From: Macrostomum lignano
Taxonomy: Eukaryota
Direction: 5' to 3'
Length of the DNA: 64,000 nt
Assembly: GCA_002269645.1 (NCBI GenBank)
Contig: NIVC01000046.1
Location: 1-64,000 of the forward strand
Positions within the stretch are counted from its first letter, which is position 1, and each line of letters opens with the position of its first letter. The notes under the pieces are model-generated. The model saw nothing but the letters and a program-made list of their open reading frames with translations, was not told the origin of the DNA and searched no databases. The translations under genes were made by a program, and so were the position numbers. This document shows, one piece after another, positions 1 to 54,151 of the stretch.

Positions 1-595
1 AATGGCTTTGCCTTTGTTGTCATGTAATACTCGAGATGCTCAGTGGGTTTTGCAGGCATATAAAAACGCAATCTTGAATGATATCTGTAGTTTAAAGGTC
101 TTGCGTGTTTTGAGTGTGTGATCAACAACTGATTGGATGCTGTCTTTATAGTCGTAGATATTTGCGGTGGTACCGTTGGTGCCGATAATTGGGATTGTGT
201 ACTCTATGTAATGTTCTGTAAACTTCCTCTGTGCAAAATTAATCTCTTCAATGGCAAGCTCCGACTCTTTTAAATGGATTAATTGCTCTAATTTCTCTTG
301 TTCCTGCTATATTTTGTGGGTACTTTGCTTTTTCACCAGTGAGAGTTTCATATTTGTTAACTAAGTTACGACTCCTCTCTTTGGTGTTCCTTTGCAGAAT
401 TTTTTATAGGCGCATACTGGTTTGATTCTAATTGATTGATGATTTCCAACTGTTTTCATAGCTTCCCAGGTGACCAGGGTCGGTGTTGAACTTTTGTTTG
501 CATGCTTCTCTTAGTGAATTACTTTTGTCTTGAAATGAGACGCCTTTTGAAAAATATTTGTTGACTAAATCTTTTGCTGGATTAGCTTTTGGCAT
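1..595 (-). pseudogene. Frameshifted ORF running off the window, possibly the N-terminus of a protein-primed DNA polymerase B
   Basis: ATG at 595. Open stretches in shifting frames (..KTFKLQISFKIAF.., ..EYYMTTKAKP) loosely resemble Polinton pPolB N-termini. No catalytic motif is visible inside the window. Confidence 0.35.
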
Positions 596-719
596 TTTTC
601 TCGAAAATATAAAAAAAAATTTTGAGGGTGACCACCCTGATAGAAAAGTTGAACTGTTTCTACATCCTATCAGTAGCTTTAGGTTTATGAAGCTGGATAA
701 AGTGAGGTTTTAAACCTCA

Positions 720-1166
720 TCACATCCGCATTATTGTAAACCCAGCATTGTGCAGTGTCATGATGGCTTTGACAATGTCAGACTTGCTTACAGAATTTTC
801 ATGCTCACAATCATCACGATCGGGGCAGCCCTCTCCTGCCTTAATTGTTATACCTTTGTCTCTTGCAATCTTTTGCAATTCAAGCTGGTGGGCTCTATCA
901 TTCCCAGCTTTAACGCAGTTGCTACACCTCCAGCTACACCACCTGCGGCACTTTACAGCGCCTGCAATGATCGGAATAAGAGCTGCTAATGGTAGGATTC
1001 CTCCTGACTTTTCATCTGTGATGCTGTGTCTTTGCTCATTACACTGAACTATTTGCTGCGTGGGATCGACTTTTACTTTGGCACCTTTAATTGATATAAG
1101 ACCTGGTTTCTTTGATTCAATGATTTTATTGAGTTTATTGATGGTTCTAGTTTCAATCTTTGTCAT
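720..1166 (-). CDS. Adenovirus pX-like / membrane-active small virion protein of the Polinton
   Basis: Motif SGG-ILPLAALIPIIAGAV resembles adenoviral pX GGFLPALIPIIAAAIGA. Compensating +1/-1 indels restore ..AGAVSAAGGVAGGVATAVKAGND.. Confidence 0.6.
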   Translation of the reverse strand: MTKIETRTINKLNKIIESKKPGLISIKGAKVKVDPTQQIVQCNEQRHSITDEKSGGILPLAALIPIIAGAVKCRRWCSWRCSNCVKAGNDRAHQLELQKIARDKGITIKAGEGCPDRDDCEHENSVSKSDIVKAIMTLHNAGFTIMRM

Positions 1167-1182
1167 TTTTTATTTTAATATT

Positions 1183-2219
1183 TTAATTAATTTCTGTGTC
1201 AGCTGGTATCACTAGGAGTTCAGCTCTAGTGAATGACCGCGTGGGGGATTTAGGGTTAAAGGCTTGAGATAAAAGTAATAGTCACCGGAGTCGGAGGTAA
1301 AATGTCTGTCTATTTTATGCACATCAAGGCTGAAGTATGGATCTGTAGCTCTTCTTTTGGTGTCTTTCTCTAGCCTCCAGGTAGATATAAAAAGCGTAGA
1401 AACTTCAGATTTGTCAGTATGTATGGTGATTCAACTCCTGGAAGCTTAGGGTAGTTCGAGGTGTGTTTTGTGTTGTGCGTGTTGTGTGGGGTTGTCGTGT
1501 TGTTGTCTGTTCTATGAGATGCCTTAAGTTCGACAGTGTCTTGTTTTAATTGCATGGGACGGTTTCAATCCAGTCATACGTGTGACTTCATTGTTCAGTT
1601 GCTCTATAACAGTGGGGAGCCGGTCTATCCACTTGGTATAGTACTGACCACTTTTTAGTTTCAGCTCTTCAGCTGTCTGCTTAGTGAATAGTCTCTTGGC
1701 TAGAGTTAGATTGAATCTTTCCACAAAAGCCTGGTCTCTGTGGAGCTCAGTTCTGCCATAGCGAATCTCTGTGTTTTTCTTTTCCATAAGGGATTTCACT
1801 ACACCCATGAATTCCTTACCCGGGTCGGTCATAAGGGTTTGGGGGTATGTGAGCGGAGAGTTTTTATAAATATCTTGGAGGGCCGCTGCAACTGCTTCTG
1901 ACTTCTTCGTCTTAAGCGGTCTCGCTTCCTTATATCTGGAGGCAACGTCTGTAATTGTAAGAGCATACTTGTAGCCTGAGTCATTGGGGAGAAACAGAAG
2001 ATCTGCTTGGTGCGCCTCATTAGGTTTATAAATACTGAAATGGGGCCTTTCAAATTTTACTGGTGGGAAATAGACTTGAAAGACAGCCTGCTTAGAGAGC
2101 CACTTTTCTACTTTAGCTTTTGGTTCCTTACTCAGCTCCATGAGTTTACTAACGGCATTTTTGCCTACAAAGAATCCTTTGTCGCTGTAGTAGAGTTTTT
2201 TAAGTTTCTGATCTGTCAT
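1183..2219 (-). CDS. Polinton-type retroviral-like (DDE) integrase, frameshifted in the C-terminal third
   Basis: ORF 1524-2219 has QADLLFL, TDPGKEF and VERFNLTL. Downstream frames give LRFLYLPG, RRATDPYFSL and ELLVIPADTE, typical of the Polinton integrase tail, ending at TAA 1183-1185. Confidence 0.9.
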
Positions 2220-2249
2220 TTATTTAAAAAGAAAATTTTAAATAAAATA

Positions 2250-2582
2250 ATGCAGCGCTCTGGTGGTAAGTTAGATTCACATGGACTGATAGAAAAGCTT
2301 CCTCATCCAAACAAAGGCTGGACACTTCCCGGCTATAAATATTGCGGGCCTTTGAATCCACTTGAAATACAGTTAGATAAAAACAATAATCCACATCCTG
2401 GGCATGAGCCTGTGAACGAGCTAGACTCTGTGTGCATGTGGCACGACGTTAAATATAGAGATTTTCCTGAGGAGAAGAATCGTTGGGACAAAGAAATGCT
2501 TAAGAGACTAGACAATATAGGGGCTTCAAGCGGATTTCGTGAGTCGATCGCTCGGAAGCTAGTTAAAGCTGTTATTTTTTAG
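2250..2582 (+). CDS. Parvovirus VP1-like phospholipase A2 domain protein (PLA2X-type)
   Basis: LPGYKYCGPLNPL Ca-binding loop and NELDSVCMWHDVKY catalytic HD motif; ATG at 2250. Removing one T from the T6 run at 2575-2580 extends it as VIFSKTKLGLG. Confidence 0.85.
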   Translation: MQRSGGKLDSHGLIEKLPHPNKGWTLPGYKYCGPLNPLEIQLDKNNNPHPGHEPVNELDSVCMWHDVKYRDFPEEKNRWDKEMLKRLDNIGASSGFRESIARKLVKAVIF

Positions 2583-3578
2583 TAAGACAAAACTGGGGTT
2601 GGGGTGTACGCGAGGGCGGGTGTTTGGGGAGAGAGGGCGAGTGCACGGGGAGAGAGGGCGAACGCACGGGAGCAGAGTTTATTTTGTGCGCTCCTAACAA
2701 TGAATTGGGAAGACTGCTGAAAGAGCTGGGGGTAGAAAGGGGCGCTTGAATCGGAAGGGCATGAGCAAGTGTGGATTTGAGTAAGTACAGTTTTTTATTC
2801 CCTAAAGAGTTGCGCACAAGAGAGATTCTCATTCTCCAGAGAGCTAAGAGCAGAAAATAAAAAGTCAACCGCTTCGCCGCAATTAGCATGCATGGACTGT
2901 GTATGTTGAGATTCCCTCCTTGATTGATATTGATTATTGGCCAAATTGCGAGGCCAGTTGGCCCGCCGAGTTGGCCTCGGCCCGCCGATTTGGCCTCGGA
3001 ATGTGGCCCGCCTAGTTGGTCTATACGGTACGAAAATATGGGGGGGGGGGGTAGAGAGGGGCGCTTGAGTCGGGAAGGGCTTAACTATTATTCTCAGCCC
3101 TAACCAAGCGCAACAGCTGCATTTTGAAAAGTAGAAGCAGAAGGGGGGGTGGGTAACTGCTATTTGCTGAGGGAGCGCAGCCCTCTAATCGATTTTGCGA
3201 ATGTACAAGTTCCACGCGTGCTTTCCTTTCCGCTTTGACAAACCCAATCAACCAAGGAAATGTATGGGGACTTCAAGCGGGTGGAGGGAATCGATCGCTC
3301 ACCCTCACATTCACACGCCTCATGTTCTATCGTTCACTGAGCTATATCGATTATTTTTTCCCTGCTTGACTCCAAGATTGTACAGTCTAAGAATTTTCTG
3401 GAATTTTCTAGCTGTATAGCTGTATTTAAGCAAATGCAGAAACACTCGGGTTGATTCTCCCCGCATATGCCATCAACTGCGACTGAGAAACGACGACTGC
3501 AGGAACTTAAGCACGCTGAAAGTGATCTAAGAAATTGTCCGCCAAACTATAAGATTAGAAGACAAGAAGATTTAGAAA

Positions 3579-4256
3579 ATGGAAGTCGAGTGGAATCTTC
3601 ATTTGACAGATAAGCAAGGCCTTTGTGCCATGCTACAAAGAGTTTTACAGGATATTCCGTCACATCTACAAGCAAGAAGAAGAGAGGAACTAACCACCTT
3701 TTTCGGTCTAGAAACTGGCGACCTACCAATCGAGTTTTTCGCCATGGCCCCTGATGATATCGCCGCAGCGAATGAAGCGCAAAATGTGAGTAGCGAAGAG
3801 AAGAAGGCGGCGGCTCTGCAGAAGAAGATGGCGGATCTGCAGATATTCAGGGAGAAGTTGTACGCATCCCGCGTAACACTAGCTGATCAGCTGATGGACG
3901 CTGTTGATCACCAGCTTCCATCTGGCGAGCAGAACATCATCACTAGGGTGAAGGCGGCTCTAGCAAAATACAAGAAGACTCAAATTGGAGGTCTACATTG
4001 GATTCTCGAAGTTGGGCGGCTGCTAAAAACTTATCGCACCGAGAACTTTGGACAAGATGTTAAAGTGCGGTTCGCCCATTTGTGTAAAAATGTAAACATC
4101 CAGGAATCAACTGGCTATTTGTACATTCGTCTGTACAAACTGTCTGTTACCTACCCAGGCTTGAGACAGGTGTCAATGCCAATTAGGGAACTAAACTCTA
4201 AGATGAAGTTTCTAGAAGAAATTTTGGTCAGTGATCCTGCGTGGAAAGTTGTGTAA
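3579..4256 (+). CDS. Polinton accessory protein of unknown function (225 aa)
   Basis: Clean ATG-to-TAA ORF with normal protein composition inside the element; no recognisable motif. Confidence 0.7.
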   Translation: MEVEWNLHLTDKQGLCAMLQRVLQDIPSHLQARRREELTTFFGLETGDLPIEFFAMAPDDIAAANEAQNVSSEEKKAAALQKKMADLQIFREKLYASRVTLADQLMDAVDHQLPSGEQNIITRVKAALAKYKKTQIGGLHWILEVGRLLKTYRTENFGQDVKVRFAHLCKNVNIQESTGYLYIRLYKLSVTYPGLRQVSMPIRELNSKMKFLEEILVSDPAWKVV

Positions 4257-4283
4257 TTTTTAAATTCAGTTCATTTAGAATTT

Positions 4284-4730
4284 TTCTAACGCGTTAGAAT
4301 TTCAAAGAGAAGATTCAACAACTGGAGACAGCCGATTGGTTAAGTAGAGGAGGGTAGCAATTTTCTCAGTACTGTGTGCAACTCAGTCGGTGGGTTTTAA
4401 ATTCTAACGCTGTTAGAAATTTCTATGTGAAAAGTTTCCCGCAAGATAAGCTTGGGCACACCAAATTTTCACATAGAAAATTCTAACGCGTTAGAGAATC
4501 TAGCTGCTGGCTCAAAGGAACGCTAGGCTGGCTCTGTATGGTTAAATAGAGGGGGGGGGGTAGAAATTTTCTAACGCCGTTAGAATTTTCTTTGTGAAAA
4601 GCTTCCCGCATGATAAGCTTGGGCACACCAAATTTTCACATAGAAAATTCTAACGGCGTTAGAGAATCTAGCTGCTGGCTCAAAGGAACGCTAGGCTGGC
4701 TCTGTATGTTGTTGAAGAATTCTAACGCAG
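4284..4730. repeat. Subterminal palindromes and ~139-bp direct repeat of the Polinton
   Basis: Perfect palindrome TTCTAACGCGTTAGAA at 4284-4299 plus several variants; direct repeat at ~4402-4540 and ~4569-4708. Confidence 0.85.
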
Positions 4731-5041
4731 ATCCTACATAGTGTCTGTTTTTTCTACCATTTTTGATACTCTTGTAATAGTTAATAAATATCCTATCAGC
4801 TGTGCAACCGTTAATAAATATATAATTCTTACTAATGAATAATAAAATTATTTATTTTTTTTTCAATGGGTAAGGACCCTGGGTTAGGGGATTTAAAGTT
4901 TTAGGGATGTGGTAGCACGTTGCGGATTGAATGTGGGGAGAAGAATGCATATTTTTTTCTGATTGTTTCGAAGATGCTATGGATGGATGTCAGTGGATTA
5001 TGTCTGTGTCAGTGAGCATAACAGGTGTCCTACTGTTATGC

Positions 5042-5275
5042 TCTGATTCTGTCAGGGATAATGCTCTGATTCTGTCAGGGATAATATGGATGGATTTAAT
5101 AGGATTATGGAGGATGTTTTGTGAGCGAGTGCGACCCCCCTTTTTTTCTGATTCTGTCGGGGATAATATGGATGGATTTAGGTGGATTATGGAGGACGTT
5201 TTCGGAGCGAGTGCGACCCCCCTTTTTTTCTGATTCTGTCAGGGATAATATGGATGGATTTAGGTGGATTATGGA
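5042..5275. repeat. ~82-bp subterminal tandem repeats of the Polinton
   Basis: TCTGATTCTGTCAGGGATAATATGGATGGATTT.. recurs at ~5065, 5147 and 5229. Confidence 0.85.
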
Positions 5276-5320
5276 GGAGGTGAAAAATTTTGTCCCAGAA
5301 GCCCCCTCATGCCTTCTACT

Positions 5321-8300
5321 GTGAACGGGTGAAATTAGAACTTCTCTGATTGCAGAGGTCTCACGAGTCTCCTCAGCTGCTCGACCACTCCGCCGATGTC
5401 GCTTCTCAGCTCACAAAGTCGGTCTCGAACCCTCGCCTCCGTGTTGTCGAAGTCGCCGCCGATTCCAGCGTTCTTGAAGTAGAGCGGAGCGTCGGGCATG
5501 AAGAAGTGCGGCATGCACTCATCGGGCGAGCTGCTCGACCTCATGAATCTCAGCCTCATGTCGAGAGACTCCTTGAGCAAAGCGATCAGATTGTGGGGCT
5601 GCCAAGAACACCAACTATATCTGCCAGGCTTCTCCAGCATTGTGAAGAGCAGAGTCTTTGCATGGTAGGTCTTGAGTCCAGGTGTGTCCAGAGTGAGCGG
5701 CAAGTGTCTCTTGAAGATGAACTTGATGAGTGTGAACAGCTGGCCCTGGACTGTGCTCAGCCGTCTCATGATGTCTTTCTCTTGGAAGCTGAAGCTCACT
5801 CTGAGCTCGTTGGTCGAGCTCGGTCTGGTCGCCCGAACGAGGTGAACATAATTTCAGCTTCCATTGAGCAGGTTGGCTGCCTGCAGAGCGCAGTGAGCGG
5901 AGAGTCGCTTTGTGACAAGTGAAGAAGATGGGTATTTCTTAAAACTGGAAATATACCCATGCGCTAATGCGAAATATACACAGCTTTAGTAGTTAAATAT
6001 ATGCTCCTGTGAGGCAGGAGCCTCTGCACCCACTGCGTGTGTCCAGCTTCAGCTTCAGCTGTTCTGGCTTCATCAGGTAGCAGCTCATCACATCTGCTCA
6101 AGCATCCTCAGGATTCAAAACCCAATGGCCCGGTCCAATGATTCCAGTTGGCATCAGAGTTTTCTTACCAATTGAAATTTCAGTTTCAATTCCAATATCA
6201 CTTAAAACTAAAATATTTTCTCTCGACTGCTTTTAACGCTTCAATTAAATTTGCGGCCAGAAGAGGCAGAACATATTTTTTTCAATTAGCTCTTTCCAAA
6301 TGCTCAAGCATCATCAGGACTCAGTGCCCCGCTGCAAGGCACCAATCAGCAGTCAGGGCGGCTTCGGTTCATTTTGTTTGAAATTTCCAAGTGAGAGCAG
6401 CAGCACCTCAGCAGAGCCATCCCGCCTACCGTGGGTCACCCAAGCACCGCTGCACCCACTCTGCTGCAATCGGAGCCTGTGAATTCAAAACCCAATGGCC
6501 CGGCTCAGCCAGTCGGCATCAGAGTTTTCTTTTCAATTTCGCCTGCCGCTTGTTTCAGCACCCAAACCGACATTCGCAGTCACAGAAGCTGCTGGAGGCT
6601 GGGCGCCACACGGTTGCGAATTTAGAAATTGACCAAAGTTAATGGGGATAATAAGTTGCATGCGGATCTCAGCATTCTGATGATGAACCCAGCCTCACTC
6701 ACCTGCTCCCACTGCCACCTGTGCGTGGCCCTCCGTGACCTGCAGCCGAGTGGCGCCTCTGCATGCGGCCTTTCTTCTTTTGCAGCCTCCTTTGAGATGG
6801 AACTGCTGCCCAGCAACCAGCACAGTCCAGTCAATGTCCGAGTCTGCAGCTGTCCTGCCGTTCACTTGCACCAGACTGTTGGCCCAGCCCTCTGCGTAGC
6901 TGCCCGTCATCCGCCTGCCATCCTGTGTGAGGACTCGAGCGACTTCTTCCAGCCAGTCAGCCAGCATCTGCTGACACTTTGCTCTCTGCTCGGTGAATCC
7001 CGCATCGCTGAGCAGTCGATGCAGCTCCTCGCTCAGGCGCCTGCGTTGCTGGTAGTCGCCTGAGAGCCTGGAATGATCCCAGATGCGTGTGGGTGATTTG
7101 CTCAGAATTGGATGGACAGAACAAGCAGGAGAGCTGAGAGTGCTGCTGCTTCAGCACTCAGACTGGCATCTCAAGCAGGAGAGCTGAGAGTGCAGCTGCT
7201 GCAGCACTCAGACTGGCATCTCAAGCAGGAGAGCTGAGAGTGCAGCTGCTGCAGCACTCAGACTGGCATCTCAAGCAGGAGAGCTGAGAGTGCAGCTGCT
7301 GCAGCACTCAGACTGGCATCTCAAGCAGGAGAGCTGAGAGTGCAGCTGCTGCAGCACTCAGACTGGCATCTCAAGCAGGAGAGCTGAGAGTGCAGCTGCT
7401 GCAGCACTCAGACTGGCATCTCAAGCAGGAGAGCTGAGAGTGCAGCTGCTGCAGCACTCAGACTGGCATCTCAAGCAGGAGAGCTGAGATTGCAGCTGCT
7501 GCAGCACTCAGTCCAACCCAATCTGAACCCTCCTGAGATTCGCTGCAATTTCTGTCCCAAGCTGCCAGCCTGTTGGAAGGCGCAATGCGGCAGTGAAAGC
7601 CAAACCGGCCAGGCTCACCGATGGAAGCCCGAATCCAAGCGGTGAGCGGCTGCTTGCCGGGCCTCTGGGCTTCTGCAATGCGTGAAGGAAGCCAGGGTTC
7701 TCACAGCAGTTGCGTTTTAGAATGTATTGCATCACATATTTCTTGATTGAGTTAAAAATTCATCTTTAACTGCAGCTTCATCAACTTCCAACGCTCTTTC
7801 AGGTGGAAGTATCAAAAATCGGAGGGAGGGTACATGTAGGTAAAAGCAGATGACCGAAAGCAGTTGAGAATATTGAAGCGGCTGCTGTCTTCCGTGAGCT
7901 GCACCTGAGCAAACCGGTGCTTGGCTGCTGAGAGACGGAGCAGCTGTGTGATGCGAGCTGGCTGCATTCGAGAGAGGGTGTCGGTGAGAGCAGAGTTCCT
8001 GCCTTCGATGGCCATTGCTGCAGCGAAGCTGAGGATGGTGCTGGATTGGAAGAGCCAGTCAGGCTTGAGGCCGAGAGAGGAAACGACATTTTCGTCAAGG
8101 CGAGAGCAAGCCGCGACTGCGTATTGGAAACGGAGATTCGCTCTCTGATCCGGACTTGATAGACACGAAATGAGGAACTTGACCACTTCCCACTGGCCAT
8201 TTCTTGCAGCAGATTTAGCAGTTTTGTTGCAGCAGTGATCTCTTTTTATTTGGTCAGCGACTGTCGGCACGAGGAACCTGACGACTTCTAGGTGACCATT

Positions 8301-8835
8301 TCTGGCAGCAGATTCAGCAGCATTGATGCAGCAGTCATCTCTTTGTTTGTGTAGCGACTGTCCGCACGAGAAACTTGACGGCTTCTAAGTGACCATTTCT
8401 TGCAGCAGATTCAGCAGCCTCGATGCTGCACTGATCTCTTTTTGCTTGTTTCGCTCTCTCATACGGTCTTGAGCGGCATGAGATGAGGAACTTGTGGACT
8501 TTTAAGGGACTCTTGATTGCAAAATATTTCGCAGCCTCGATCCTGCACTGACCTCTTTTTGTGTGATCAGCGACTGGCTCCTCGAGAAACTTGACGAATT
8601 CTAAATGACCCTCACTGGCAGTAATTTCTGCAGTTTCAATACAGCACTGATTTCTTTTTGTTTGGTCAGTGACTGACTCCACGAGAAACTTGACGACTTC
8701 CAACTGACCCTTTCTTGCAGCAAGTTGTTTGCAAAATATATATCTCTTTTTCTTTTGCTGAAGGTCCAGATGATGTCTGAGTGCCTGGATATTCCCATTT
8801 TTGGCAGCCTCATCAGCACTGATTTGTTGGCGCAT
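5321..8835 (-). pseudogene. ANK-cGLR paralog A (pseudogene)
   Basis: Ankyrin exon 8835-~7930 (2-nt deletion near 8337, 3' end deleted), 54-nt exon 7672-7619, NTase exon 7067-6703 (GSYAEG..SDID). The Mab-21 exon starts at 5880, has a frameshifting replacement, and is truncated by the Polinton at 5320. Confidence 0.88.
7121..7510. repeat. 50-bp intronic VNTR (~8 copies)
   Basis: Unit CAAGCAGGAGAGCTGAGAGTGCAGCTGCTGCAGCACTCAGACTGGCATCT; about 1 copy at 28080 and about 2 copies at 51341. Confidence 0.95.
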
Positions 8836-9026
8836 TTTACTTGGTGCGCTGTGAAGTGCTTTTCACTGGAAGGTAAATATTTTTTGTGTTCGTTTAGTAA
8901 TTGAATTGGTTGAAAGAGGAAGTCAGAAATAGGGGAGAGGGGAAGATGGAAAGAGGGGCGGTTTCTTGGTTTGAAACGTTAAAAACACGTTTTGAAGAGA
9001 GTAAATACCTTAAATTACTGACTGGT

Positions 9027-10694: not shown

Positions 10695-11763
10695 GGTCAC
10701 ACTTTTGCCCAGCCAAGAGCATGATTTCCTTGACAGGCTGCCTAATTGCCTGCAAAATGCACATATTTAGTGACTCTGAAATTTAAAAAATCAGCAATCA
10801 ATAATTCAATTACCGTATGCAGTGGTTGGTTTACATCTTGCTAAAGCCTGCTTTCTCGCTTCAGTTCTTCATGAACTCTTGGACGAAGCAGTGGCCTCTC
10901 GCAGCTGGTCGGAAGTTACTGCGGACGTCTTGTCCTTAGGCAAAGCTCAACAGTTCTGTATTGGAAGCGAATTTTTCGATACTGTAAAAGGCTTGGAGTC
11001 AGCCACGGCGATGCTGTGGTGTATGTATCTTTATGTAAAATAAAGAGAAACAGTCGATTCTATGCCTTTCTCTCTCTCCATTTTATTGTTTTGAACTGCT
11101 CTAACAAGTGGTAGATCAGTGCGAGCGCTAAATGCCAGGACCGCTACTGACGCTAGCGCAGTGTCCACTGTCCACTGTCCATATTGTCATGAGCGCTACT
11201 GTATTAAGCCTTCAATTCAAACAGACTTGTTTGTACTGTTTGTACTGACCAGAGAACAAATCGAACTGATGATAAAGTACGTATACTGCGTTTATAACAA
11301 ATATAATAATTTTTGAGACATAAAAGTTTCGAGCAATGTGTCTATACCAACTAGAAACAAGGACTCATTTTGCACCCCTGTATGCCGTGTTCAGTCAGCT
11401 CCTTCCGGCAGCAGGGCCACCCGAGCAGTGAAAGGCAGTCCGAGCAGCTGGGCCCTGCTGAATTCAGCCGGAGCCCGAATCTCAATGGACTCCCGTTCCT
11501 CATCTCCAGCTGCCGCGGGTCTCTCCAGCAGCCTCAGCTGTTCGGCTGGAAGTCTCTCGGGAAGCAGAGTCGTCGAGGTCCCTAATCTTTGACGCAAGGG
11601 AACTCACAGTGTTGAGTCTCAGACTGTGCGCTGTTGAGCACCAGTCTACCAGGACACAGTAAAGAGGTCACTTCTCTATTGTGGCTGAAAAAGGTGCTTT
11701 TGCGCTGTCCAGTCACCGAGATTTTTCAGTGGGTGGCTTTTCAGTGTCTGTCTTAATTTCATT

Positions 11764-13245
11764 TAGTGTCTGTCTCAGTGTCTGTCTCAGTGTCTGTCTC
11801 AGTGTCTGTCTCAGTGTCTGTCTCAGTGTCTGTCTCAGTGTCTGTCTCAGTGTCTGTCTCAGTGTCTGTCTCAGTGTCTGTCTCAGTGTCTGTCTCAGTG
11901 TCTATCTCAGTGTCTGTCTCAGTGTCTGTCCTAGTGTCTGTCTCTGTCTGTCCTAGTGTCTGTATTAATTTCATTTAGTGTCTGCCTTAGTGTCTGTCCT
12001 AGTGTCTGTCTCAGTGTCTGTCTCAGTGTCTGTCTCAGTGTCTGTCTCAGTGTCTGTCCTAGTGTCTGTATTAATTTCATTTAGTGTCTGCCTTAGTGTC
12101 TGTCCTAGTGTCTGTATTAATTTCTTTTAGTGTCTGCCTTAGTGTCTGTCTTAGTGTCTGTCTCAGTGTCTGTGTTAGTGTCTGTCTTAGTGTCTGTCTT
12201 AGTGTCCGTCTCAGTGTCTGTCTCAGTGTCTGTATTAATTTCATTTAGTGTCTGCCTTAGTGTCTGTCCTAGTGTCTGTCTCAGTGTCTGTCTTAGTGTC
12301 TGTATTAGTGTCTGCCTTAGTGTCTGTCCTAGTGTCTGTCTTAGTGTCTGTCCTAGTGTCTGTCTTAGTGTCTGTATTAGTGTCTGCCTTAGTGTCTGTC
12401 CTAGTGTCTGTCTTAGTGTCTGTGTAAGTGTCTGTCTTAGTGTCTGTCTTAGTGTCCGTCTCAGTGTCTGTCTCAGTGTCTGTCTTAGTGTCTGTCTCAG
12501 TGTCTGTCTCAGTGTCTGTCTCAGCGTCTGTCTCAGTGTCTATCTCAGTGTCTGTCTCAGTGTCTGTCCTAGTGTCTGTCTCTGTCTGTCCTAGTGTCTG
12601 TATTAATTTCATTTAGTGTCTGCCTTAGTGTCTGTCCCAGTGTCTGTCTCAGTGTCTGTCTCAGTGTCTGTCTCAGTGTCTGTCCTTGTGTCTGTCTCAG
12701 TGTCTGTCCTAGTGTCTGTCTCAGTGTCTGTCCTAGTGTCTGTATTAATTTCATTTAGTGTCTGCCTTAGTGTCTGTCCTAGTGTCTGTCCTAGTGTCTG
12801 TAATAATTTCATTTAGTGTCTGCCTTAGTGTCTGTCTTAGTGTCTGTCTCAGTGTCTGTGTTAGTGTCTGTCTTAGTGTCTGTCTTAGTGTCCGTCTCAG
12901 TGTCTGTCTCAGTGTCTGTATTAATTTCATTTAGTGTCTGCCTTAGTGTCTGTATTAGTGTCTGTCCTAGTGTCTGTCCTAGTGTCTGTATTAATTTCAT
13001 TTAGTGTCTGTCTTAGTGTCTGTCCTAGTGCCTGTCTTAGTGTCTGTGTAAGTGTCTGTCTTAGTGTCTGTCTTAGTGTCTGTCTTAGTGTCCGTCTCAG
13101 TGTCTGTATTAGTGTCTGTATTAGTGTCTGTATTGATTTCATTTAGTGTCTGCCTTAGTGTCCGTCCTAGTGTCTGTCCTAGTGTCTGTATTAATTTCAT
13201 TTAGTGTCTGTCTTAGCGTCTGTCCTAGTGTATGTCCTAGTGTCT
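11764..13245. repeat. 12-bp (AGTGTCTGTCTC) satellite with punctuating ATTAATTTCATTT motif
   Basis: Long degenerate 12-mer array; the same family occurs at 58131-58858. Confidence 0.95.
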
Positions 13246-22455: not shown

Positions 22456-23888
22456 TCAAGCCGCTGCATCAAGTCTCTCCAGCTTCCGCCTGACCCAGCC
22501 GATCTTCTCCTCGTCCTGCGTCTCCATGGCGACGCGTCTCTCTTCCTCGATCATCTCCATCTGCTGCAGGCTGAGCTCCACGTGCTCGCGGCAGTCGCTG
22601 TAGTGAGCCAGAGTGAGCAGCTCCTCCAAGTCCGGGTCTCCAAGCAGCTGTTCAATCCAATGATCGAATGCGATTGCAGGTGCGCGATTGTGGAGCAGCT
22701 CAGCTTGGAGACTCCAGCTCAGGCAGCGGAAGTTCACGTGCAGGTGGGGCTGCGAGAGAGACTGCGACAGTCTGGCTGTGAACAGAGTCTGCGTGAACTT
22801 GGGAAGGAATGGGAAACGAGGCGGAGAGTCGCATGGGAGGCAGAACCTCCACGCCCAGTCAGAGTCTTCTGGCAGCTTTATCTCACTAAACTGGTATCTA
22901 CCCTTATCTCGAATATCCAATGGCTTCAACCCCGACTCAACCTGATGTCCCCGCAGCTTCATCGTGAGTCTCTCAGCCTCCTTAAAGTCTCTGAACTTCC
23001 AATGCGCCATGGCGGTCATGCACAGGGCGGCGCACTTGCACCACTTCAGCTTACGAAGGAGACTGAGCTGCCTCATCAGGGTGTCTCTGTCGCTCGATTC
23101 CGACTGCAGCTCGCTCACACACTGGTGCACCACACTGTACACGTCTGCGAACTTGTAGTACCTAGCTGGATAGTCACGTCCTTTCCTGATCTTCGTGACA
23201 GCAGGCGGCGCTGTCAGAGGCAGCAGAGTGAACGGGTGAAAGTAGAACTTCTCTGACTGCAGAGGTCTCACGAGACTCCTCAGCTGCTCGACCACTCCGC
23301 CGATGTCGCTTCTCAGCTCACAAAGTCGGTCTCGAACCCTCGCCTTTGTGTTGTCGAAGTCGCCGCCGATTCCAGCATTCTTGAAGTAGAGCGGAGCGTC
23401 TGGCATGAAGAAGTGCGGCATGCACTCATCGGGCGAGCTGCTCGAGTCGATGAAGCTCAGCATCATGTCGAGAGACTCCTTTAGCAGAGCGATCAGATTG
23501 TGGGGCTGCCAAGCCTCAGTTTCAAGATATTTGCCATGCTTCTCCAGCATTGTGAAGAGCAGAGTCTTTGCATGGTAGGTCTTGAGTCCATGTGTGTCCA
23601 GAGTGAGCGGCAAGTGTCTCTTGAAGATGAACTTGATGAGTGTGAACAGCTGGCCCTGGACTGTGCTCAGCTGTCTCATGATGTGTTTCTCTTGGAAGCT
23701 AAAGCTCACTCTGAGCTCGTTGGTCGAGCTCGGTCTGGTCGCCCGAACGAGGTGAACTGGAATATATGTGTCTTCAATCAGTTTTCTAATTCTGTCCTCA
23801 CAGAAACTGCTGCAGCACTCGATCGCATGGCACGTGTCCTGTGCAGGCCGCACACCGCACGCAGTGGCTCTCACTGCAGGTTGGTTGC
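22456..23888 (-). CDS. ANK-cGLR paralog B exon 4: Mab-21/cGAS-like C-lobe plus ~270-aa helical extension
   Basis: Acceptor CCCTGCAG|GC in phase 1. Motifs QDTCHAIEC, ELRVSFSFQEK, LKTYHAKTLLF and CMPHFFMP match Mab-21/cGAS family signatures; open to TGA. Confidence 0.9.
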
Positions 23889-24381
23889 CTGCAGGGCGCA
23901 GTGAGCGGAGAGTCGCTTTGTGGCGAGTGAAAAAGGATGGGTTGGTTTGAATCCAATGAAATATTATTTAAAACAACAATATTTTCTCTCGGCTGCTAGA
24001 TAATTCTGATGATTCGACAGTAAAATTAAATTTACTCTTCTTTCAAACCTAAAAGGCTAAAAGGTAGAAGTTTCCACCTAATTTTCATATTTTTAAGGCA
24101 TGCAATTATGAAAAATATTGAATTGGACTTAAAGACTTGATAAGAAAACTTAAGACAAGCGCTTAGTTTCAAAGCTCTGTCATTCATTCGACCATAATAA
24201 AGATCGCTTAACACCTGTTTAGATAAGTAACTATTCGTACTTTTGTTACCCCCAATGAAAAGAGAAAATACAAATGAGGTGACAAAATCAAACAGTGGAA
24301 CGAAAGAACAATAAGAGCAAACAGCTACGGCAGATGCAATAACAGAACTGTCCGCACCAGTCTCGGTCTCTCACTCAGTGC

Positions 24382-25146
24382 TCACACCAAAGAAGTCCTG
24401 GGCGCGACCTGGTGGGTCACCGGCTGCTGGCGGAGCTGCTCAGAGTTGGGTTGCTGGGTTTCAAACCGCCTGCACAGCCGGTTCACGTGCACCCAGCGAA
24501 TCGGCCGGCTGCCGAAGGCGCGGCGGATGCACACAGAGTGGCCGCGCTGCTCAAGCACTGTCCAGCCCGGCTCCAAATAGGGCGCCAGCTTCGAGCGCCG
24601 CATCTCAATGCTCAGCAGCACCTCGGCGCCTTGGAGAAACTGCAACAGATCTGACGCCTTCTTGTCGTGAGCCGCCTTCTGCTGCTGCCCGGCGGCTACC
24701 AGATTCTCCTTGACGAACTCGCGAATCCGGGCCAGCCGCCACCCCAGTAGTGCCAAGTAGGTGCTGGTGCTGCTCTTCACCTTCGGCGGGAGCGCCGGGT
24801 CGTAGCCGGTCATCACCGTCAGCGGTGCCACCTTGGTTGAGCTGTGGACCCTGGAGTTGTAGGACAGGACCACCAGCGGCAGCTGCTCCTCCCAGCTGGA
24901 ATCGGTATCGGCGAGCAGCCTCAACAGCTGCAGCAGCGACTTGTTGCCGAGCTGCACCAGTCCATTTCCCTGTGGATGGTACGGCGTGGTGCGCGTCTTC
25001 CTGATGCCCAGTGCTCGCAGCGTCTCCTGGAACAGCTCGCTATCCAAGTTCGCGCCCTGGTCCGAGTGGATGATAGATGGGACTTCAAGCAGGGAGAAGA
25101 CCTTCACTGCAGCGTCCGCGATGGTCTTGGCGGTCTGATCTGACAT
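24382..25146 (-). mobile_element. Gypsy integrase fragment in intron 3 of paralog B
   Basis: IIHSDQGANLDS and RTTPYHPQGNGL motifs; no upstream pol or LTRs. Confidence 0.85.
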
Positions 25147-36650: not shown

Positions 36651-39600
36651 CCCGCTCCAATGGGATCCAGCAGCCGCAGCACCTGCCGCCGCTCGAATCG
36701 CTCTGCCACCTGCGCACACGTCAGACCCTGACCGTCTCGATGACTCGCATCCGCTCCTCTGTCCATCAGAGCCTTGGCTGCTCGCACGTGACCGGCTTCG
36801 CACGCTCGTGACAGAGCAGTCCGACCCTGACTGTCTTCAGCACGCACTGACGCACCGAGATCGATGAGTTTCTCAATGAGCTCGTGATGACCTGCATCAG
36901 CTGCCAGCATGAGAGCAGTGGCTCCAGTGCTGTCTGGCAGATCGACATGCTGTGTGCTGACTCGCTCATCATTGATCAGTGTGACAGCAAGAGCGACGTG
37001 TCTTTGAGAGATGGAGAGACGGAGCAGCTGTGTGATGTGAGCTGGCTGCATTCGAGAGAATGTTTTTTTGAGAACAGAGTTCCTGCCTTCGATGGCCATT
37101 GCTGCGGTGAAGTTGAGGATGGTGCTGGATTGGAAGAGCCAGTCGGGCTCGAGGCCGAGGGAGGCAACGACATCTTCGTGAAGACGAGAGCAAGCCATGA
37201 CTGCGCAATGGATACGCAGATTCGCTCTCTGATCCGGACTTGAGAGGCACGAGATGAGAAAATCAACCGCTTCTCCTTGATTCTTTTCTGTAGCATATTT
37301 GGCAGCCTGGATGCAGTACTGATTTCTTTTTCTTTGGTCAGCGACTGTCAGCACAAGAAACTTGACGACTTCCCAATGATAATTGTCAGCAGCAGATTCA
37401 GCAGCCTCGATGCAGCACTGATCTCTTCTAGTTTGGTCAGCGACTGTCGCCACGAGAAACTTGACGACTTCCCACTGACCACTGATTACAGCTATTCTCG
37501 CAGCCTTGATGCAGCACTGATCTCTTTTTGTTTGGTCAGCGACTGTCGGCACGAGAAACTTGACGACTTTCCACTGATAATTGTCAGCAGCAGATTTGAC
37601 AGCCTTGATGCAGCACTGATCTCTTTTTGTTTGGTCAACGACTGTCGGCACGAGAAACTTGACGACTTTCCACTGATAATTGTCAGCAGCAGATTTGACA
37701 GCCTTGATGCAGCACTGATCTCTTTTTGTTTGGTCAACGACTGTCGGCACGAGAAACTTGACGACTTCCCACTGATCATTGTATGCAGCAGATTCTGCAG
37801 CCTTGATGCAGCACTGATCTCTTCTTGTTTGATCAGCGACTGTCGGCACAAAAAACTTGACCACTTCTAAGTGACCATTTCTTGCAGCAGATTTGGCAGC
37901 CTTGATGCAGCACTGATCTCTTTTTGTTTGGTCTGCGACTGTCAGCACAAGAAACTTGACGACTTCTAAGTGACCTTTTCTTGCAGCAGATTTAGCAGCC
38001 TTGATGCAGCACTGATCTTTTTTTGTTTGGTCAGCGACTGTCGGCACGAGAAACTTGACGACTTCTAAGTGACCATTTATTGCAGCAGATGTGGCAGCCT
38101 CGATGCAGCAATCATATCTTTTTGTTTGGACAGCGACTTCAGGCACGAGAAACTTGACGACTTCTAACTGACCATTTCTTGCAGCAGATGTGGCAGCTCT
38201 GATGCAGCACTGATCTCTTTTTGTCTGGTCAGCGACTGTCGGCACGAGAAACTTGACGACTTCTATCTTACCTTTGTGTGCAGCACATTTAGCTGCCTCG
38301 ATGCAGCAATCATATCTTTTTTTTTGGTCCGCGACTTTAGACACGAGAAACTTGACGACGTCCCACTGATAATTGTCAGCAGCAGATGTGGCAGCCTGGA
38401 TGTAGCACTGATCTCTTATTGTTTGCTCAGCGACTTTAGGCACGAGAAACTTGACGACTTCCCACTGATCATTGTCAGCAGCAGATTCAGCAGCCTCGAT
38501 GCAGCACTGATCTCTTTTTATTTGGTCAGCGACTTCAGGCACGAGAAACTTGACGACTTCCCACTGACCACTGATTACAGCTATTTTTGCAGCCTTGATG
38601 CAGCACTGATCTCTTATTGTTTGCTCAGCGACTTTAGGCACGAGAAACTTGACGACGTCCCACTGATAATTGTCAGCAGCAGATGTGGCAGCCTCGATGC
38701 AGCACTGATCTCTTCTTGTTTCGTCAGCGACTGTCGCCACGAGAAACTTGACCACTTCTAACTGACCATTGTATGCAGCAGATGTGGCAGCCTTGATGCA
38801 GCACTGATCTCTTCTTGTTTGGTCAGCGGCTGTCGACACGAGAAACTTGACCACTTCTAACTGACCATTGTATGCAGCAGATGTGGCAGCCTCGATGCAG
38901 CACTGATCTCTTCTTGTTTGGTCAGCGGCTGTCGACACGAGAAACTTGACCACTTCTAACTGACCATTGTATGCAGCAGATGTGGCAGCCTCGATGCAGC
39001 ACTGATCTCTTCTTGTTTGGTCAGCGACTGTCGACACGAGAAACTTGACCACTTCTAACTGACCATTGTATGCAGCAGATGTGGCAGCCTCGATGCAGCA
39101 CTGATCTCTTTTAGTTTGGTCAACGACTGTTGGCACGAGAAACTTGACGACTTCCCACTGATAATTTTCAGCAGCAGATGTGGCAGCCTCAATGCAGCAC
39201 TGATCTCTTTTTGTTTGGTCAGCGACTGTCGGCACGAGAAACTTGACCACTTCTAACTGACCATTGTATGCAGCAGATTTAGCAGCCTTGATGCAGCACT
39301 GATCTCTTCTTGTTTGGTCAGCGACTGTCGGCACGAGAAACTTGACGACTTCCCACTGGTAATTGTCAGCAGCAGATTCAGCAGCCTCGATGCAGCACTG
39401 ATCTCTTCTTATCTTGTCAGCGACTGTCGCTACAAGAAACTTGACGACTTCCCAATGATCATTGTATGCAGCAGATTTTGCAGCCTCGATGCAGCAATCA
39501 TCTTTTTTTGTTTGGTCAGCGACTGTCGGTACGAGAAACTTGACCACTTCTAACTGACCATTGTATGCAGCAGATTTGGCAGCCTTGATGCAGCACTGAT

Positions 39601-39994
39601 CTCTTCTTGTTTGGTCAGCGACTGTCGGCACGAGAAACTTGACCACTTCTAACTGACCATTGTATGCAGCAGATGTGGCAGCCTCGATGCAGCAATCATA
39701 TCTTTTTGTTTTGTCAGCGACTTTAGACACGAGAAACTTGATGACTTCCCACTGATCATTGTATGCAGCAGATTCTGCAGCCTCGATGCAGCACTGATCT
39801 CTTCTTGTTGGGTCAGCGACTTTAGAGACGAGAAACTTGACTACTTTTAACTGACCCTTTCTTGCGGCAAGTTTAGAATACCTTTTGCAAAAAAGATATT
39901 TTCTGTTTGTCTCTCTCTGAAGGTCCAGATGATGTTGGAGTGCCTGGATATTTCCTGTCTTGGCGGCCTCATCGGATCTGATCTGTTGGCTCAT
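36651..39994 (-). CDS. ANK-cGLR paralog B exon 1: ~27 atypical ankyrin repeats, constant region, 3 canonical ankyrins
   Basis: 33-aa repeats such as DQCCIEAATSAAYNGQLEVVKFLVPTVADQTRR; C-terminal GATALMLAADAGH and GRTALSRACEAGH. The ORF stop lies inside donor GG|GTGAGT (phase 2). Confidence 0.92.
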
Positions 39995-40272
39995 TTCGCT
40001 TGGTGTGCTGGTGCGTGCTTCATCTGGAAGGTACGTAAATAGTTTTCTCCTGGTTTATTACGAGTACTTTAATGGATTTAGAGAAACGGTCAGAGAGAAA
40101 AAGGGTGGCGTCGTGATTTTGAAGACTTGTCAAGGGTATGCCCAATGATTCCTAGATGTTGTCAGAGTGGCAGATGTCAGTCACGGCTGCAGTCAGAGAG
40201 GCATGCATTTCAAACGTATGTGCAACAGGTTGCCAAAGTCTCTCAGCTGCCCACACTCTGTAGTCTCATGCA

Positions 40273-48832: not shown

Positions 48833-50319
48833 TCAGTCTGACTCAGCCTTCCTTTTCCGACCTCGATTTTGCGGCTCGTCTTTGAGGACTAAGGCTGCTA
48901 AGGCTGCTGCTTCAAGTCTTTCCAGCTTCTGCCAGACCCAGCCGATCTTCTCCTCGTCTTGCGTCTCCATGGCGACGCGTCTCTCTTTCTCGATCATCTC
49001 CATCTGCTGCAGGCTGAGCTCAACGTGCTCGCGGAAGTCGCTGTAGTGAGCCAGAGTGAGCAGCTCCTCCAAGTCCGGGTCTTATTCCAGCTCTCGCTTC
49101 CAATCCTCCAGTTTAATTGCAGGTGCGCGATTGCGGAGCAGCTCAGCTTGGAGACTCCAGCTCAGGCAGCGGAAGTTCACGTACAGGTGGGAGGAGAGAG
49201 GCTGCGACAGTCTGGCTGTGAACAGAGTCTGCGTGAACTCGGGAAGGAATGGGAAGCGAGGCGGAGAGTCGCAGGGGAGGCAGAACCTCCACGCCCAGTC
49301 TGAGTCTTCTGGCAGTTTAGAATGGCTATATTGATTTGCTTGAATATCATCTGGCTTCAACCCTGTCTCAACCTGATGTCTCTGCAGCTCCATCGTGAGT
49401 CTCTTAGCCTCCTCAGATTCTCCGAACTTCAAATGCGCCATGGCGGTCATGCACAGGGCGGCGCACTTGCACCACTTCAGCTCATGCAGGAGACTGAGCT
49501 GCCTCATCAGGGTGTCTCTGTCGCTCGATTCCGACTTCAGCTCGCCCACACACTGGTGCACCACACTGTACACGTATTCGAACCGGAATTTCTCTAGTAT
49601 ATAGTATCTACTGTCCCTTATCTCCGTGACAGCAGGCGGCGCTGTCAGAGGCAGCAGAGTGAACGGGTGAAAGTAGAACTTCTCTGACTGCAGAGGTCTC
49701 ACGAGACTCCTCAGCTGCTCGACCACTCCGCCGATGTCGCTTCTCAGCTCACAAAGTCGGTCTCGAACCCTCGCCTTCGTGTTGTCGAAGTCGCCGCCGA
49801 TTCCAGCGTTCTTGAAGTAGAGCGGAGCGTCGGGCATGAAGAAGTGCGGCATGCACTCATCGGGCGAGCTGCTTGAGTCGATGAAGCTCAGCATCATGTC
49901 GAGAGACTCCTTGAGCAGAGCGATCAGATTGTGGGGCTTCCAAGTCTCAGTTTCAGGATCTGTGCCATGCTTCTCCAGCATTGTGAAGAGCAGAGTCTTT
50001 GCATGGTAGGTCTTGAGTCCATGTGTGTCCAGAGTGAGCGGCAAGTGTCTCTTGAAGATGAACTTGATGAGTGTGAACAGCTGGCCTTGGACTGTGCTCA
50101 GCCGTCTCATGATCCGTTTCTCTTGGAAGCTGAAGCTCACTCTGAGCTCGTTGGTCGAGCTCGGTCTGGTCGCCCGAACGAGGTGAACTGGAATATATGT
50201 GTCTTCAATCAGTTTTCTAATTCTGTCCTCACAGAAGCTGCTGCAGCACTCGATCGCATGGCACGTGTCCTGTGCAGGCCGCACACCGCACGCCGTGGCT
50301 GTCACTGCAGGTTGGTTGC
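48833..50319 (-). CDS. ANK-cGLR paralog C exon 4 (Mab-21 C-lobe); premature in-frame TAA at 49082-49084
   Basis: Acceptor CTCTGCAG|GC in phase 1; same motifs as paralog B. The frame continues after the TAA as DPDLEELL... to 48833. Confidence 0.88.
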
Positions 50320-50925
50320 CTGCAGAGCGCGGTGAGCGGAGAGTCGCTTTGTGGCGAGTGAAAAAGATGGGTTGGTTTGAAACTTGCTAAATTTAAATTT
50401 TAAAATTCTCTTAAGAGCCAAATAGCTCGTAAATGCACCTGTGAGGCATGAGCCTCTGCACCCACTGAGTTCGCCCAGATTCAGCTTCAGCTGCTCTGGC
50501 TTCATCAGGCTGCAGCTGAGCACAGCTGCTCAAGCATCATCAGGACTCAGTGCCCCGCAGAAAGGCACCAATCAGCAGTCAGGGCGGCTTCGGTTCATTT
50601 TGTTTGAAATTTCCAAGTGAGAGCAGCAGCACCTCAGCAGAGCCATGCCGCCTACCGTGGGTCACCCAAGCACCGCTGCACCCACTCTGCTGCAATCGGA
50701 GCCTGTGAATTCAAAACCCAATGGCCCGGCTCAGCCAGATGACATCAGAGTTTTCTTTTCAATTTCGCCTGCCGCTTATTTCAGCACCCAAGCCGACATT
50801 CGCAGTCACAGAAGCTGCTGGAGGCTGGGCGCCACTCGGTTGGGAATTTAAAATTGAGCAAAGTTAATGGGCTTTCAGTTGCATGCAAATCTCAGCATTC
50901 TGATGATGAACCCAGCCTCACTCAC

Positions 50926-51614: not shown

Positions 51615-51884
51615 CTGCAATGCGGGGAAGGAAGTCTGCGGTCTACTGTCAGCTGCATTTGTGCGCAGGCAGTGGCTGATTGACTTTTTTTATGTTGCAA
51701 TTCGCCATTTTTGACCGTGCCTTGCCTTAGAAATCCGCCTAGTTCTTCTTTCTTGTGTTCGCCACATAGTAATATACTGAAAATACGATCGGTGCGCCAC
51801 TTTGCTACATTTTTAGTACAGAAATGCTTAACTAAAAATGAAAATATACTGAAGAGATGTTTGCGAAATTCTCGCCTCACTCAC

Positions 51885-54151
51885 CGCGCTTCACTGAATT
51901 CCAGCAGTCGTTGCACCTGCCGCTGCTCAAATTGCTGTGCCACCTGCGCACACGTCAGACCCCGACCGTCTCGATGACGCGCATACGCTCCTCTGTCCAT
52001 CAGAGCCTTGACTGCTCGCAGGTGACCGGCTTCGCACGCTCGTGACAGAGCAGTCCGACCCTGACTGTCTTCAGCACGCACTGACGCACCGAGATCGATG
52101 AGTTTCTCAATGAGCTCGTGATGACCTGCATCAGCTGCCAGCATGAGAGCAGTGGCTCCAGTGCTGTCTGGCAGATCGACATGATCTGTGCTGACTCGCT
52201 CATCATTGATCAGTGTGACAGCAATGGTGACAGCAAGAGCAATGTGTCTTTGAGAGATGGAGAGACGGAGCAGCTGTGTGATGCGAGCTGGCTGCATTCG
52301 AGAGAGGGTGTCGGTGAGAACAGAGTTCCTGCCTTCGATGGCCATTGCTGCAGTGAAGCTGAGAACGGTGCTGGATTGGAAGAGCCAGTCGGGCTCGAGG
52401 CCGAGGGAGGCAACGACATCTTCGCGAAGACGAGAGCAAGCCGGGACTGCGCATTGGAAACGGAGCTGCGCTTTTTGATCCGGACTTGAGAGACACAAGA
52501 TAAATAATTTGACGGCTTCCCACTGACCCTCGCTTGCAGCAGTTTTGGCAGCCTCGATGCAGCACTGATCTCTTTTTGTCAGGTCAGCGACTATCGGCAC
52601 GAGAAACTTGACGACTTTTAAGCGACCATTGATTGCAGCAGGTTTAGCAGCCTTGATGCAGCAATCATCTCTTTTTTTTTGGTCAGCGACTGTCGTCACG
52701 AGAAACTTGACGACTTTTAAGCGACCATTTCTTGCAGCAGATTTGGCTGCCTTGATGCAGCACTGATCTCTTTTTGTCTCGTCAGCGACTGTCGCCTCCA
52801 GAAACTTGACGATTTCCCACTGACCATTGCTTGCAGCAGATTCAGCAGCCTCGATGCAGTAGTGATCTCTTCTATTTGGGTCAGCGACTTTCGGCAGGAA
52901 AAACTTGACGACTTCTAACTGACCATTTCTTGCAGCAGATTTGGCTGCCTTGATGCAGCACTGATCTCTTTTTGTCTTGTCAGCGACTGTCGCCTCCAGA
53001 AACTTGACGATTTCCCACTGACCATTGCTTGCAGCAGATTCAGCAGCCTCGATGCAGCACTGATCTCTTTTTGTTTTGTTAGCGATTGTCGGCACGAGAA
53101 ACTTGACGACTTTTAACTGACCATTGCTTGCAGCAGATTTGGCTGCCTCGATGCAGCACTGATCTCTTTTTGTTTTGTTAGCGACTGTCGGCACGAGAAA
53201 CTTGACGATTTCCCACTGACCATTGCTTGCAGCAGATTCAGCAGCCTCGATGCAGTAGTGATCTCTTCTATTTGGGTCAGCGACTTTCGGCAGGAAAAAC
53301 TTGACGACTTCTAACTGACCATTTCTTGCAGCAGATTTGGCTGCCTTGATGCAGCACTGATCTCTTTTTGTCTCGTCAGCGACTGTCGCCTCCAGAAACT
53401 TGACGATTTCCCACTGACCATTGCTTGCAGCAGATTCAGCAGCCTCGATGCAGCACTGATCTCTTTTTGTTTTGTTAGCGATTGTCGGCACGAGAAACTT
53501 GACGACTTTTAACTGACCATTGCTTGCAGCAGATTTGGCTGCCTCGATGCAGCACTGATCTCTTTTTGTTTTGTTAGCGACTGTCGGCACGAGAAACTTG
53601 ACGATTTCCCACTGACCATTGCTTGCAGCAGATTCAGCAGCCTCGATGCAGTAGTGATCTCTTCTATTTGGGTCAGCGACTTTCGGCAGGAAAAACTTGA
53701 CGACTTCTAACTGACCATTTCTTGCAGCAGATTTGGCTGCCTTGATGCAGCACTGATCTCTTTTTGTCTTGTCAGCGACTGTCGCCTCCAGAAACTTGAC
53801 GATTTCCCACTGACCATTGCTTGCAGCAGATTCAGCAGCCTCGATGCAGTAGTGATCTCTTCTATTTGGGTCAGCGACTTTCGGCAGGAAAAACTTGACG
53901 ACTTTTAAGCGACCATTTCTTGCAGCAGATTTAGCAGCCTCGATGCAGCACTGATCTCTTTTTGTTTTGTTAGCGACTGTCGGCACGAGAAACTGGACGA
54001 CTTCTAAGTGACCCTCGCTCGCAGCAAGTGTTAAAGCGGGTTTGCAAAAAAGATATATTTTGTTCCTTCCTCGTAGAAGGTTCAGATGATGTTTGAGTGC
54101 TTCGATGTTTCCTGTGCTGGCAGCCTCCTCAGCACTGATTTGTTCGTTCAT
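51885..54151 (-). CDS. ANK-cGLR paralog C exon 1: ~16 atypical ankyrin repeats, constant region, canonical ankyrins
   Basis: 33-aa repeats; the ORF stop lies inside donor CG|GTGAGT (phase 2). Confidence 0.92.

Follow-up and report, generated by a model that had tools for sequence, protein, structure and literature searches.

Polintons, also referred to as Mavericks, are virus-like DNA elements (Kapitonov & Jurka 2006; Pritham et al. 2007; as summarised in PMC10748475 and PMC8097293) that are defined by the joint presence of a family-B DNA polymerase (PolB) and an integrase, with an ATPase and a protease forming a morphogenesis module (PMC10748475, PMC8502044). They are 13-25 kb long, harbor both double and single jelly-roll capsid genes, are bounded by inverted repeats of 46-1,500 bp, and are flanked by a target-site duplication of 5-8 bp, usually 6 bp. 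The ends of Mavericks follow the motif 5'-AG.../...CT-3', which takes the form (AGT)2/(ACT)2 in vertebrates (PMC8097293). Related gene sets are found in the adintoviruses, of which the Alpha group is characterized by phospholipase A2 (PLA2)-like genes carrying a pX-like C-terminal domain (PMC8502044). Here we describe a stretch of 64,000 nucleotides from the genome of Macrostomum lignano, a regenerating model flatworm, comprising positions 1 to 64,000 of the forward strand of contig NIVC01000046.1 (375,480 bp; assembly GCA_002269645.1) and referred to below as the window. It begins with the right-hand 5.3 kb of an element whose gene content supports its assignment as an adintovirus-like Polinton/Maverick, and this element adjoins the interrupted last exon of a gene belonging to a tandem family of ankyrin-cGAS-like proteins. 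No description of Polintons in Macrostomum was found in the literature searched, nor anything on cGLRs in Macrostomum or on a tandem ankyrin-cGAS-fold family.

Like the described Polintons/Mavericks, the Macrostomum element, taken across its copies, encodes a protein-primed family-B polymerase, a retrovirus-like rve integrase, an A32/FtsK-type ATPase, and an adenovirus-type cysteine protease. It exceeds 11.7 kb, is present in many near-identical copies, and has one sharp terminus, ...ACT-3'. Since PolB and integrase are both encoded, the element falls within the definition of the group at the level of gene content. It differs from the described members in its right end, which consists of about 1 kb of non-coding DNA with 163-bp and 82-bp repeats together with an orphan gene of 225 amino acids (aa), and in that inverted repeats, a 6-bp duplication, and jelly-roll capsids were not seen in the DNA fetched, the left part of the element lying outside it. 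With the Alpha (Mayetiola-class) adintoviruses (Starrett et al. 2021, PMC8502044) the element shares an animal host, a PLA2 gene resembling that of parvovirus VP1u, and the combination of PolB and integrase; a small open reading frame (ORF) nearby has a faint, sub-threshold similarity to pX. In the Alpha adintoviruses, however, PLA2 and pX are parts of one protein, whereas here the hint of pX falls on a separate ORF; the Macrostomum element is moreover known from integrated copies only, with no virion genes or free-ended genomes observed.

The host proteins resemble the cGLR/Mab21 nucleotidyltransferases in their predicted fold, in the presence of a Mab-21_C domain, and in their GS and D-x-D catalytic motifs. 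Unlike cGLRs, they carry ankyrin repeats at the N-terminus and are extended at the C-terminus by ~260-300 residues, and they are found only in M. lignano and as two metagenomic proteins.

The element-host junction

Three copies of the host gene, A, B, and C, lie on the minus strand of the window, and copy A is the one that adjoins the element. Read directly, the window runs ...CATGCCTTCTACT|GTGAACGGGTGAAATTAGAAC, where the bar stands between positions 5320 and 5321. When positions 5201-6200 were compared with the window by BLASTN, 5321-5847 of copy A aligned with 23228-23757 of paralog B at 94.2% identity and with 49659-50188 of paralog C at 94.0%, and both alignments started at exactly 5321. 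To the left of this position A, B, and C are unrelated in a three-way alignment. Position 5320 is the last base with similarity to the element and 5321 the first with similarity to the host exon, with no gap, no overlap, and no filler between them. Because the join is this clean it is to be read as the product of integration, a chance misjoin being very unlikely, and 5320|5321 is confirmed as a genuine element-host junction. A first-pass annotation of this DNA had proposed that the bases following the element match the middle of exon 4 in B (at 23228) and C (near 49659), and these coordinates proved correct.

The empty site corresponds to 23227|23228 in B and 49658|49659 in C. Within B it lies 664 nt into the last coding block of 1,437 nt, where it cuts a threonine codon following ...FYFHPFT, at about residue 510 of the related protein P0051. 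The junction thus falls 3' of the cGAS-like core and 5' of a C-terminal extension of ~256 codons. When P0051 is mapped onto the window, copies A and B each resolve into four coding blocks, so the interrupted exon is exon 4, as the annotation had stated; three blocks were recovered in C. The first host bases, GTGAAC (5321-5326), would form the right-hand copy of a predicted target-site duplication of 6 bp, and the same hexamer stands singly at the uninterrupted sites (B, 23228-23233; C, 49659-49664). The first base of the window is also the first base of the contig, which therefore begins within the element.

Copies of the element elsewhere in the genome

The protein encoded by the 225-aa gene (ORF225) belongs to a cluster of seven M. 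lignano sequences at 90% identity, members of which (P0001-P0006) were used to fetch 13 further loci of the element family from the M. lignano genome. These copies were compared pairwise only, by BLASTN. Positions 1-5320 of the window are collinear with every one of the 13 loci at 96-97.5% identity; substitutions account for differences of 1.5-2.6% and indels for the remainder. Twelve of the 13 finish in the same ...CATGCCTTCTACT and then pass into unrelated flanks. Wherever the right end is kept, the terminal 40 nt (5281-5320 in the window, plus strand) differ by no more than one mismatch.

Comparison of the flanks resolves the loci into the independent sites L002, L003, L004 (the same insertion as L015), L005 (as L006), L007 (as L008 and L009), L011, and L012 (as L013). 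Together with the window, these seven sites provide eight right-hand junctions. The proposal that the element ends at 5320 is borne out, as eight independent insertions support this position as its true terminus. The element family is young and multi-copy, with at least eight insertions about 2% apart in substitutions. Copies at the other sites, hereafter siblings, run at least 6.4 kb further to the left than the copy in the window, giving a length of at least 11.7 kb, and they are still homologous to each other at the left edge of the loci, which end 10 kb to the left of ORF225 and still within the element. One sibling (L011) is a 5'-truncated copy with no terminus at its truncated side. The idea that 2600-5320 might be an element distinct from the integrase-bearing part was ruled out by the collinearity of the whole 5.3 kb in all copies.

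The one locus of the 13 that does not share the right end, L016, has a second element in its place. This second, divergent Polinton-like family occupies L016:11445-20678 and includes a compact run of uninterrupted minus-strand ORFs, and its PolB, protease, and ATPase show 27-38% protein identity to those of the first family. Similarity to the first family ends within the 82-bp repeats at this locus, which suggests that one of the two elements is nested inside the other. A 16-kb metagenomic relative (L014) differs from the element in its gene layout.

Gene content of the element

The part of the element present in the window (1-5320) is cut on its left by the start of the contig, which truncates a gene on the minus strand (3-595) that was recognized by tblastn with a sibling ORF as the 5', N-terminal part of a protein-primed PolB gene. 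The sibling ORF (L003:4642-6492) matches the Pfam model DNA_pol_B_2 with 28.1 bits against a cut-off of 25.8, and the window fragment represents the 5' end of the same gene; as assembled, three reading frames are needed to span it, implying at least two frameshifts. An ORF of the polymerase N-terminus in this sibling (L003:6453-7064) gave no Pfam match to an OTU domain, a weak negative given that the ORF is fragmentary. The next gene, ORF148 (720-1166, minus strand), is intact, encodes 148 aa, and is present in sibling copies. Its resemblance to Adeno_PX, the adenovirus core protein pX, is weak and below the cut-off (E = 0.012).

The rve-family integrase gene follows on the same strand (1186-2219), with its Pfam rve core at 1524-2219 (E = 6.6e-9; 36.4 bits against a cut-off of 32.6). 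Siblings have integrase ORFs of 341-345 aa, whereas the window copy needs two reading frames and thus carries at least one frameshift as assembled. On the plus strand, 2040-2746 encode a PLA2 of the parvovirus type, whose domain (2250-2582) matches Pfam Phospholip_A2_4 with E = 2e-14 and whose translation contains the HDxxY motif; this gene is likewise broken into two reading frames, compared with a sibling ORF of 236 aa. By eye only, a stretch of ~40 bp that ends the coding region of the PLA2 domain (2515-2560) recurs in diverged form ~740 bp downstream (3255-3300), with G-rich, low-complexity DNA separating the two.

ORF225 (3579-4256, plus strand) is intact and corresponds to the hypothetical protein BOX15_Mlig026570. 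It is the sole gene of the element annotated in GenBank; neither the integrase product of the window nor that of ORF148 has been recorded as a called gene. ORF225 has a single remote relative, at 31% identity, in a set of 1.8 billion representative proteins. It is open in nearly all of the fetched copies, a count that is biased by the copies having been fetched through ORF225 itself. Beyond it lie subterminal repeats of ~163 bp (4402-4708), each containing a palindrome, and a tandem repeat of 82 bp (5065-5278) with 2.6 copies in the window. Both vary in number among copies of the element; the 163-bp unit occurs about seven times in L002 (10824-12680), twice in the window, and once in L008.

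Further genes of the element are seen in the sibling L003, in the part that would lie to the left of the contig start. These are a Pox_A32-type packaging ATPase (27.1 bits against a cut-off of 22.8) and an adenovirus-type protease matching Peptidase_C5 (21.9 bits against 21.3), both Pfam models. A search with the ATPase returned no M. lignano protein through which further copies could have been fetched. The earlier description of the element as Polinton- or adintovirus-like is thereby upheld, through the integrase and PLA2 in the window and through PolB, ATPase, and protease in its siblings. At its right end the element reads ...TCTACT-3' in all copies that keep this end, the only one available, which is one mismatch from the vertebrate Maverick motif (ACT)2 (PMC8097293).

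The interrupted gene family

The family to which copy A belongs consists of proteins of 650-820 residues in which Pfam Mab-21_C scores above threshold, and for which the N-terminal Mab-21 model of Pfam gives no sequence match. A sequence search of the PDB with the non-ankyrin, cGAS-like region returned nothing relevant, and a Foldseek search with a full-length protein model was dominated by ankyrin-repeat matches. The structure search was redone with a family member that lacks ankyrin repeats, P0053, for which the AlphaFold model has a pLDDT of 73 and a pTM of 0.74. Its top 50 matches in the PDB were all to cGAS, MAB21L1, or the coral Sp-cGLR1, each with a probability of 1.00, E values of 4e-6 to 1e-4, and target TM scores of 0.35-0.52 (0.45-0.52 for the best). 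Thirteen family members cover the region of the motif TGSYAEGW...DSDIDWT, of which 12 keep the motif and one has D-I-N, and GS...DID is kept in exon 3 of A, B, and C. The predicted fold and the motifs justify calling the family cGAS-like, in agreement with the earlier reading of the interrupted gene.

Paralog B is the only one in the window with a full-length last exon. Its exon 4 (22456-23892, minus strand) is uninterrupted, and the relatives of its open frame of 472 codons are limited to M. lignano proteins and the two metagenomic ones. Exon 4 of paralog C (48926-50326, minus strand) has a reading frame that stops early, at 49082, while similarity to the family proteins continues past this stop to 48926. 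In the window B retains a complete reading frame, as does C apart from its shorter C-terminus. One annotated protein, P0060, ends soon after ...AVTEIRDSRY, a stretch that also occurs in C. A partial protein covering 54% of the query, P0059, was considered as the missing half of exon 4 and ruled out, being the N-terminal half of another, uninterrupted paralog.

The structure and decay of copy A

Copy A retains recognizable parts of all four coding blocks, all on the minus strand. The mapping of P0051 places a remnant of exon 1, representing the first ~36 codons, at 7908-8015 and exon 2, of 18 codons, at 7618-7671. Exon 3, which encodes the nucleotidyltransferase N-lobe with the GS...DID motif, lies at 6701-7069 and its frame is open. 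The kept 5' portion of exon 4, corresponding to the Mab-21_C part of the core, occupies 5321-5847 as judged by alignment to B and C.

The copy nevertheless carries several lesions. It lacks ~600 bp that in C (51660-52260) encode ankyrin repeats. In exon 4, 118 bp (B 23758-23875) have been replaced by a filler of 20 bp (5848-5867), which is unique in the window and for which no source was found. The net loss of 98 bp shifts the reading frame, and nearly invariant core residues are lost with it. The exon also has an in-frame deletion of 3 bp and, 14 nt from the junction, a TAA nonsense codon (5335-5337) where both B and C have TAC. Judged by these lesions, copy A is most likely a pseudogene, a decayed paralog.

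Mode of insertion and the order of events

The best explanation of the locus, and one in which we place considerable confidence, is that the element was put into the last exon of copy A, within the ankyrin-cGAS-like array, by its own rve-family integrase. This would have proceeded by ordinary two-ended strand transfer with staggered cuts. The far end, on another contig, would then read ...GTGAAC followed by the inverted terminus, which the first-pass annotation had predicted as an AGTAG... inverted repeat, with ~770 bp for the C-terminal extension before the hexamer. By entering after the cGAS-like core, the element would detach the extension of ~256 codons, and constraint on copy A had probably been relaxed before the insertion took place.

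This last point is suggested by the relative amounts of change. In the 527 bp that the copies share, the divergence of A is 5.5% from B and 5.5% from C, whereas B and C differ by 2.8%, so that about 4% falls on the A branch. Codon changes on this branch are 11 nonsynonymous to 2 synonymous, compared with 1:5 for B and 2:2 for C. The window copy of the element, in contrast, has private differences at 35 of 4,453 positions when compared with all six independent siblings, and this 0.79% is an upper bound for the change that it has undergone since insertion. The change on the A branch therefore exceeds this private divergence about fivefold; if neutral rates were equal, most of the decay of A would be older than the insertion. 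That the element hit an already decaying paralog is accordingly the order we lean towards, with somewhat better than even confidence.

The reverse order, in which insertion inactivated a functional gene and the ankyrin deletion, the 118-to-20-bp replacement, and the nonsense codon came later, is appreciably less likely while still deserving consideration. Which event came first cannot be read directly from the sequence, the nonsense codon would have had no added effect once the exon had been split, and exon 3 of copy A has kept its open frame and GS...DID. Set against this are the private substitutions of the element, so few beside the ~21 on the A branch that at equal rates only ~4 of the latter would be younger than the insertion, and the excess of nonsynonymous changes on that branch.

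An alternative that accepts the junction as genuine, but not as one side of a simple insertion, is unlikely. It would involve a one-ended or intramolecular integrase event, or else subsequent loss or rearrangement of DNA on the far side, so that the remainder of exon 4 would not adjoin the other end. The far side lies beyond the contig start, other rearrangements are found close by in copy A, including one that adjoins a native GTGAAC (5842-5847), and the truncated copy at L011 is an example of an incomplete element elsewhere. The terminus is, however, complete to its last base, as in the seven other insertions, and standard integration suffices for everything seen in the window. Least probable of all is a chimeric assembly at 5320|5321, for although only 5.3 kb separate the junction from the start of the contig, which is PacBio-based and opens within a repeated element, and the neopolyploid M. 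lignano genome is described as hard to assemble (PMC10733133), a misjoin would need to land by chance on the last base of the element with neither overlap nor filler, and 5.3 kb fits within the length of a single read.

Several observations weigh against integration of a Polinton/Maverick into a decaying paralog. Only one junction of the insertion is visible, and the junctions available at the other sites are all right-hand ones. None of 15 further loci retrieved from the genome extends as far as the left end of the element, and searches of the window and of the retrieved loci with the last 30 or 14 nt in reverse complement gave no credible inverted match to the right terminus. The ORFs of the available 11.7 kb of the element include no capsid genes. 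The pseudogene-first order is based on small counts (13 codon changes) and on assumed equal neutral rates, and the cluster of A-specific changes beside the 3-bp deletion may represent a single event. Finally, duplicate contigs that carry one and the same insertion disagree as to the ORFs that are open (L005 against L006; L007 against L008 and L009), so that many of the frameshifts are likely to be assembly or haplotype noise in this PacBio assembly; such noise may thus contribute to the numbers of frameshifts and to some of the 0.79% divergence.

Target choice and consequences of the insertion

The first-pass annotation had raised the mapping of other copies as a check on whether the element prefers cGLR loci. 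None of the seven other insertion sites, each covered by up to 9 kb of right flank, is similar to the ankyrin-Mab21 family, so that no sign of such a preference was found, and the first six flank bases show no consensus. A native GTGAAC does adjoin both the element junction (5321-5326) and the 118-to-20-bp replacement (5842-5847). Exon 4 of B, 1.4 kb in length, contains this hexamer six times, and a rough estimate puts the chance probability of this double adjacency near 1%. If the element were a recently or currently spreading endogenous adintovirus-like virus that had landed in the ankyrin-cGAS-like array non-accidentally, then the array would be a preferred target, or the loss of a sensor copy would be tolerated or even favored in a virus-host conflict, and the two breakpoints adjoining GTGAAC would hint at repeated action of the integrase on the exon. 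We regard this scenario as highly doubtful.

The locus most likely represents a commonplace event, in which an element of a known class entered a paralog that is redundant and decayed. The insertion was most likely without functional consequence, as the copy that was hit is decayed, intact or nearly intact paralogs are adjacent, and seven other insertions lie elsewhere; the biological effect of a virus-like element in this innate-immune-type gene copy is probably nil. The locus provides a base-exact terminus and a partial gene map for a young, multi-copy Polinton/Maverick family in this flatworm, and it documents a lineage-specific tandem family of ankyrin-cGAS-fold proteins. Its chief practical use is in annotation, where copy A is to be labeled a pseudogene and NIVC01000046.1 noted as beginning in a repeat.

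Other features of the window

The gene copies differ greatly in their span, which is ~14.6 kb for B and ~3.4 kb for C. An intron of B contains an ORF of 254 aa on the minus strand (24382-25146) that resembles the integrase of long terminal repeat retrotransposons. Directly upstream of each gene copy is an array with a period of 99 bp, each unit corresponding to one ankyrin repeat (8172-8876, 37221-40033, and 52469-54191). A satellite-like tandem repeat is common to 11741-13226 and 58130-58856.

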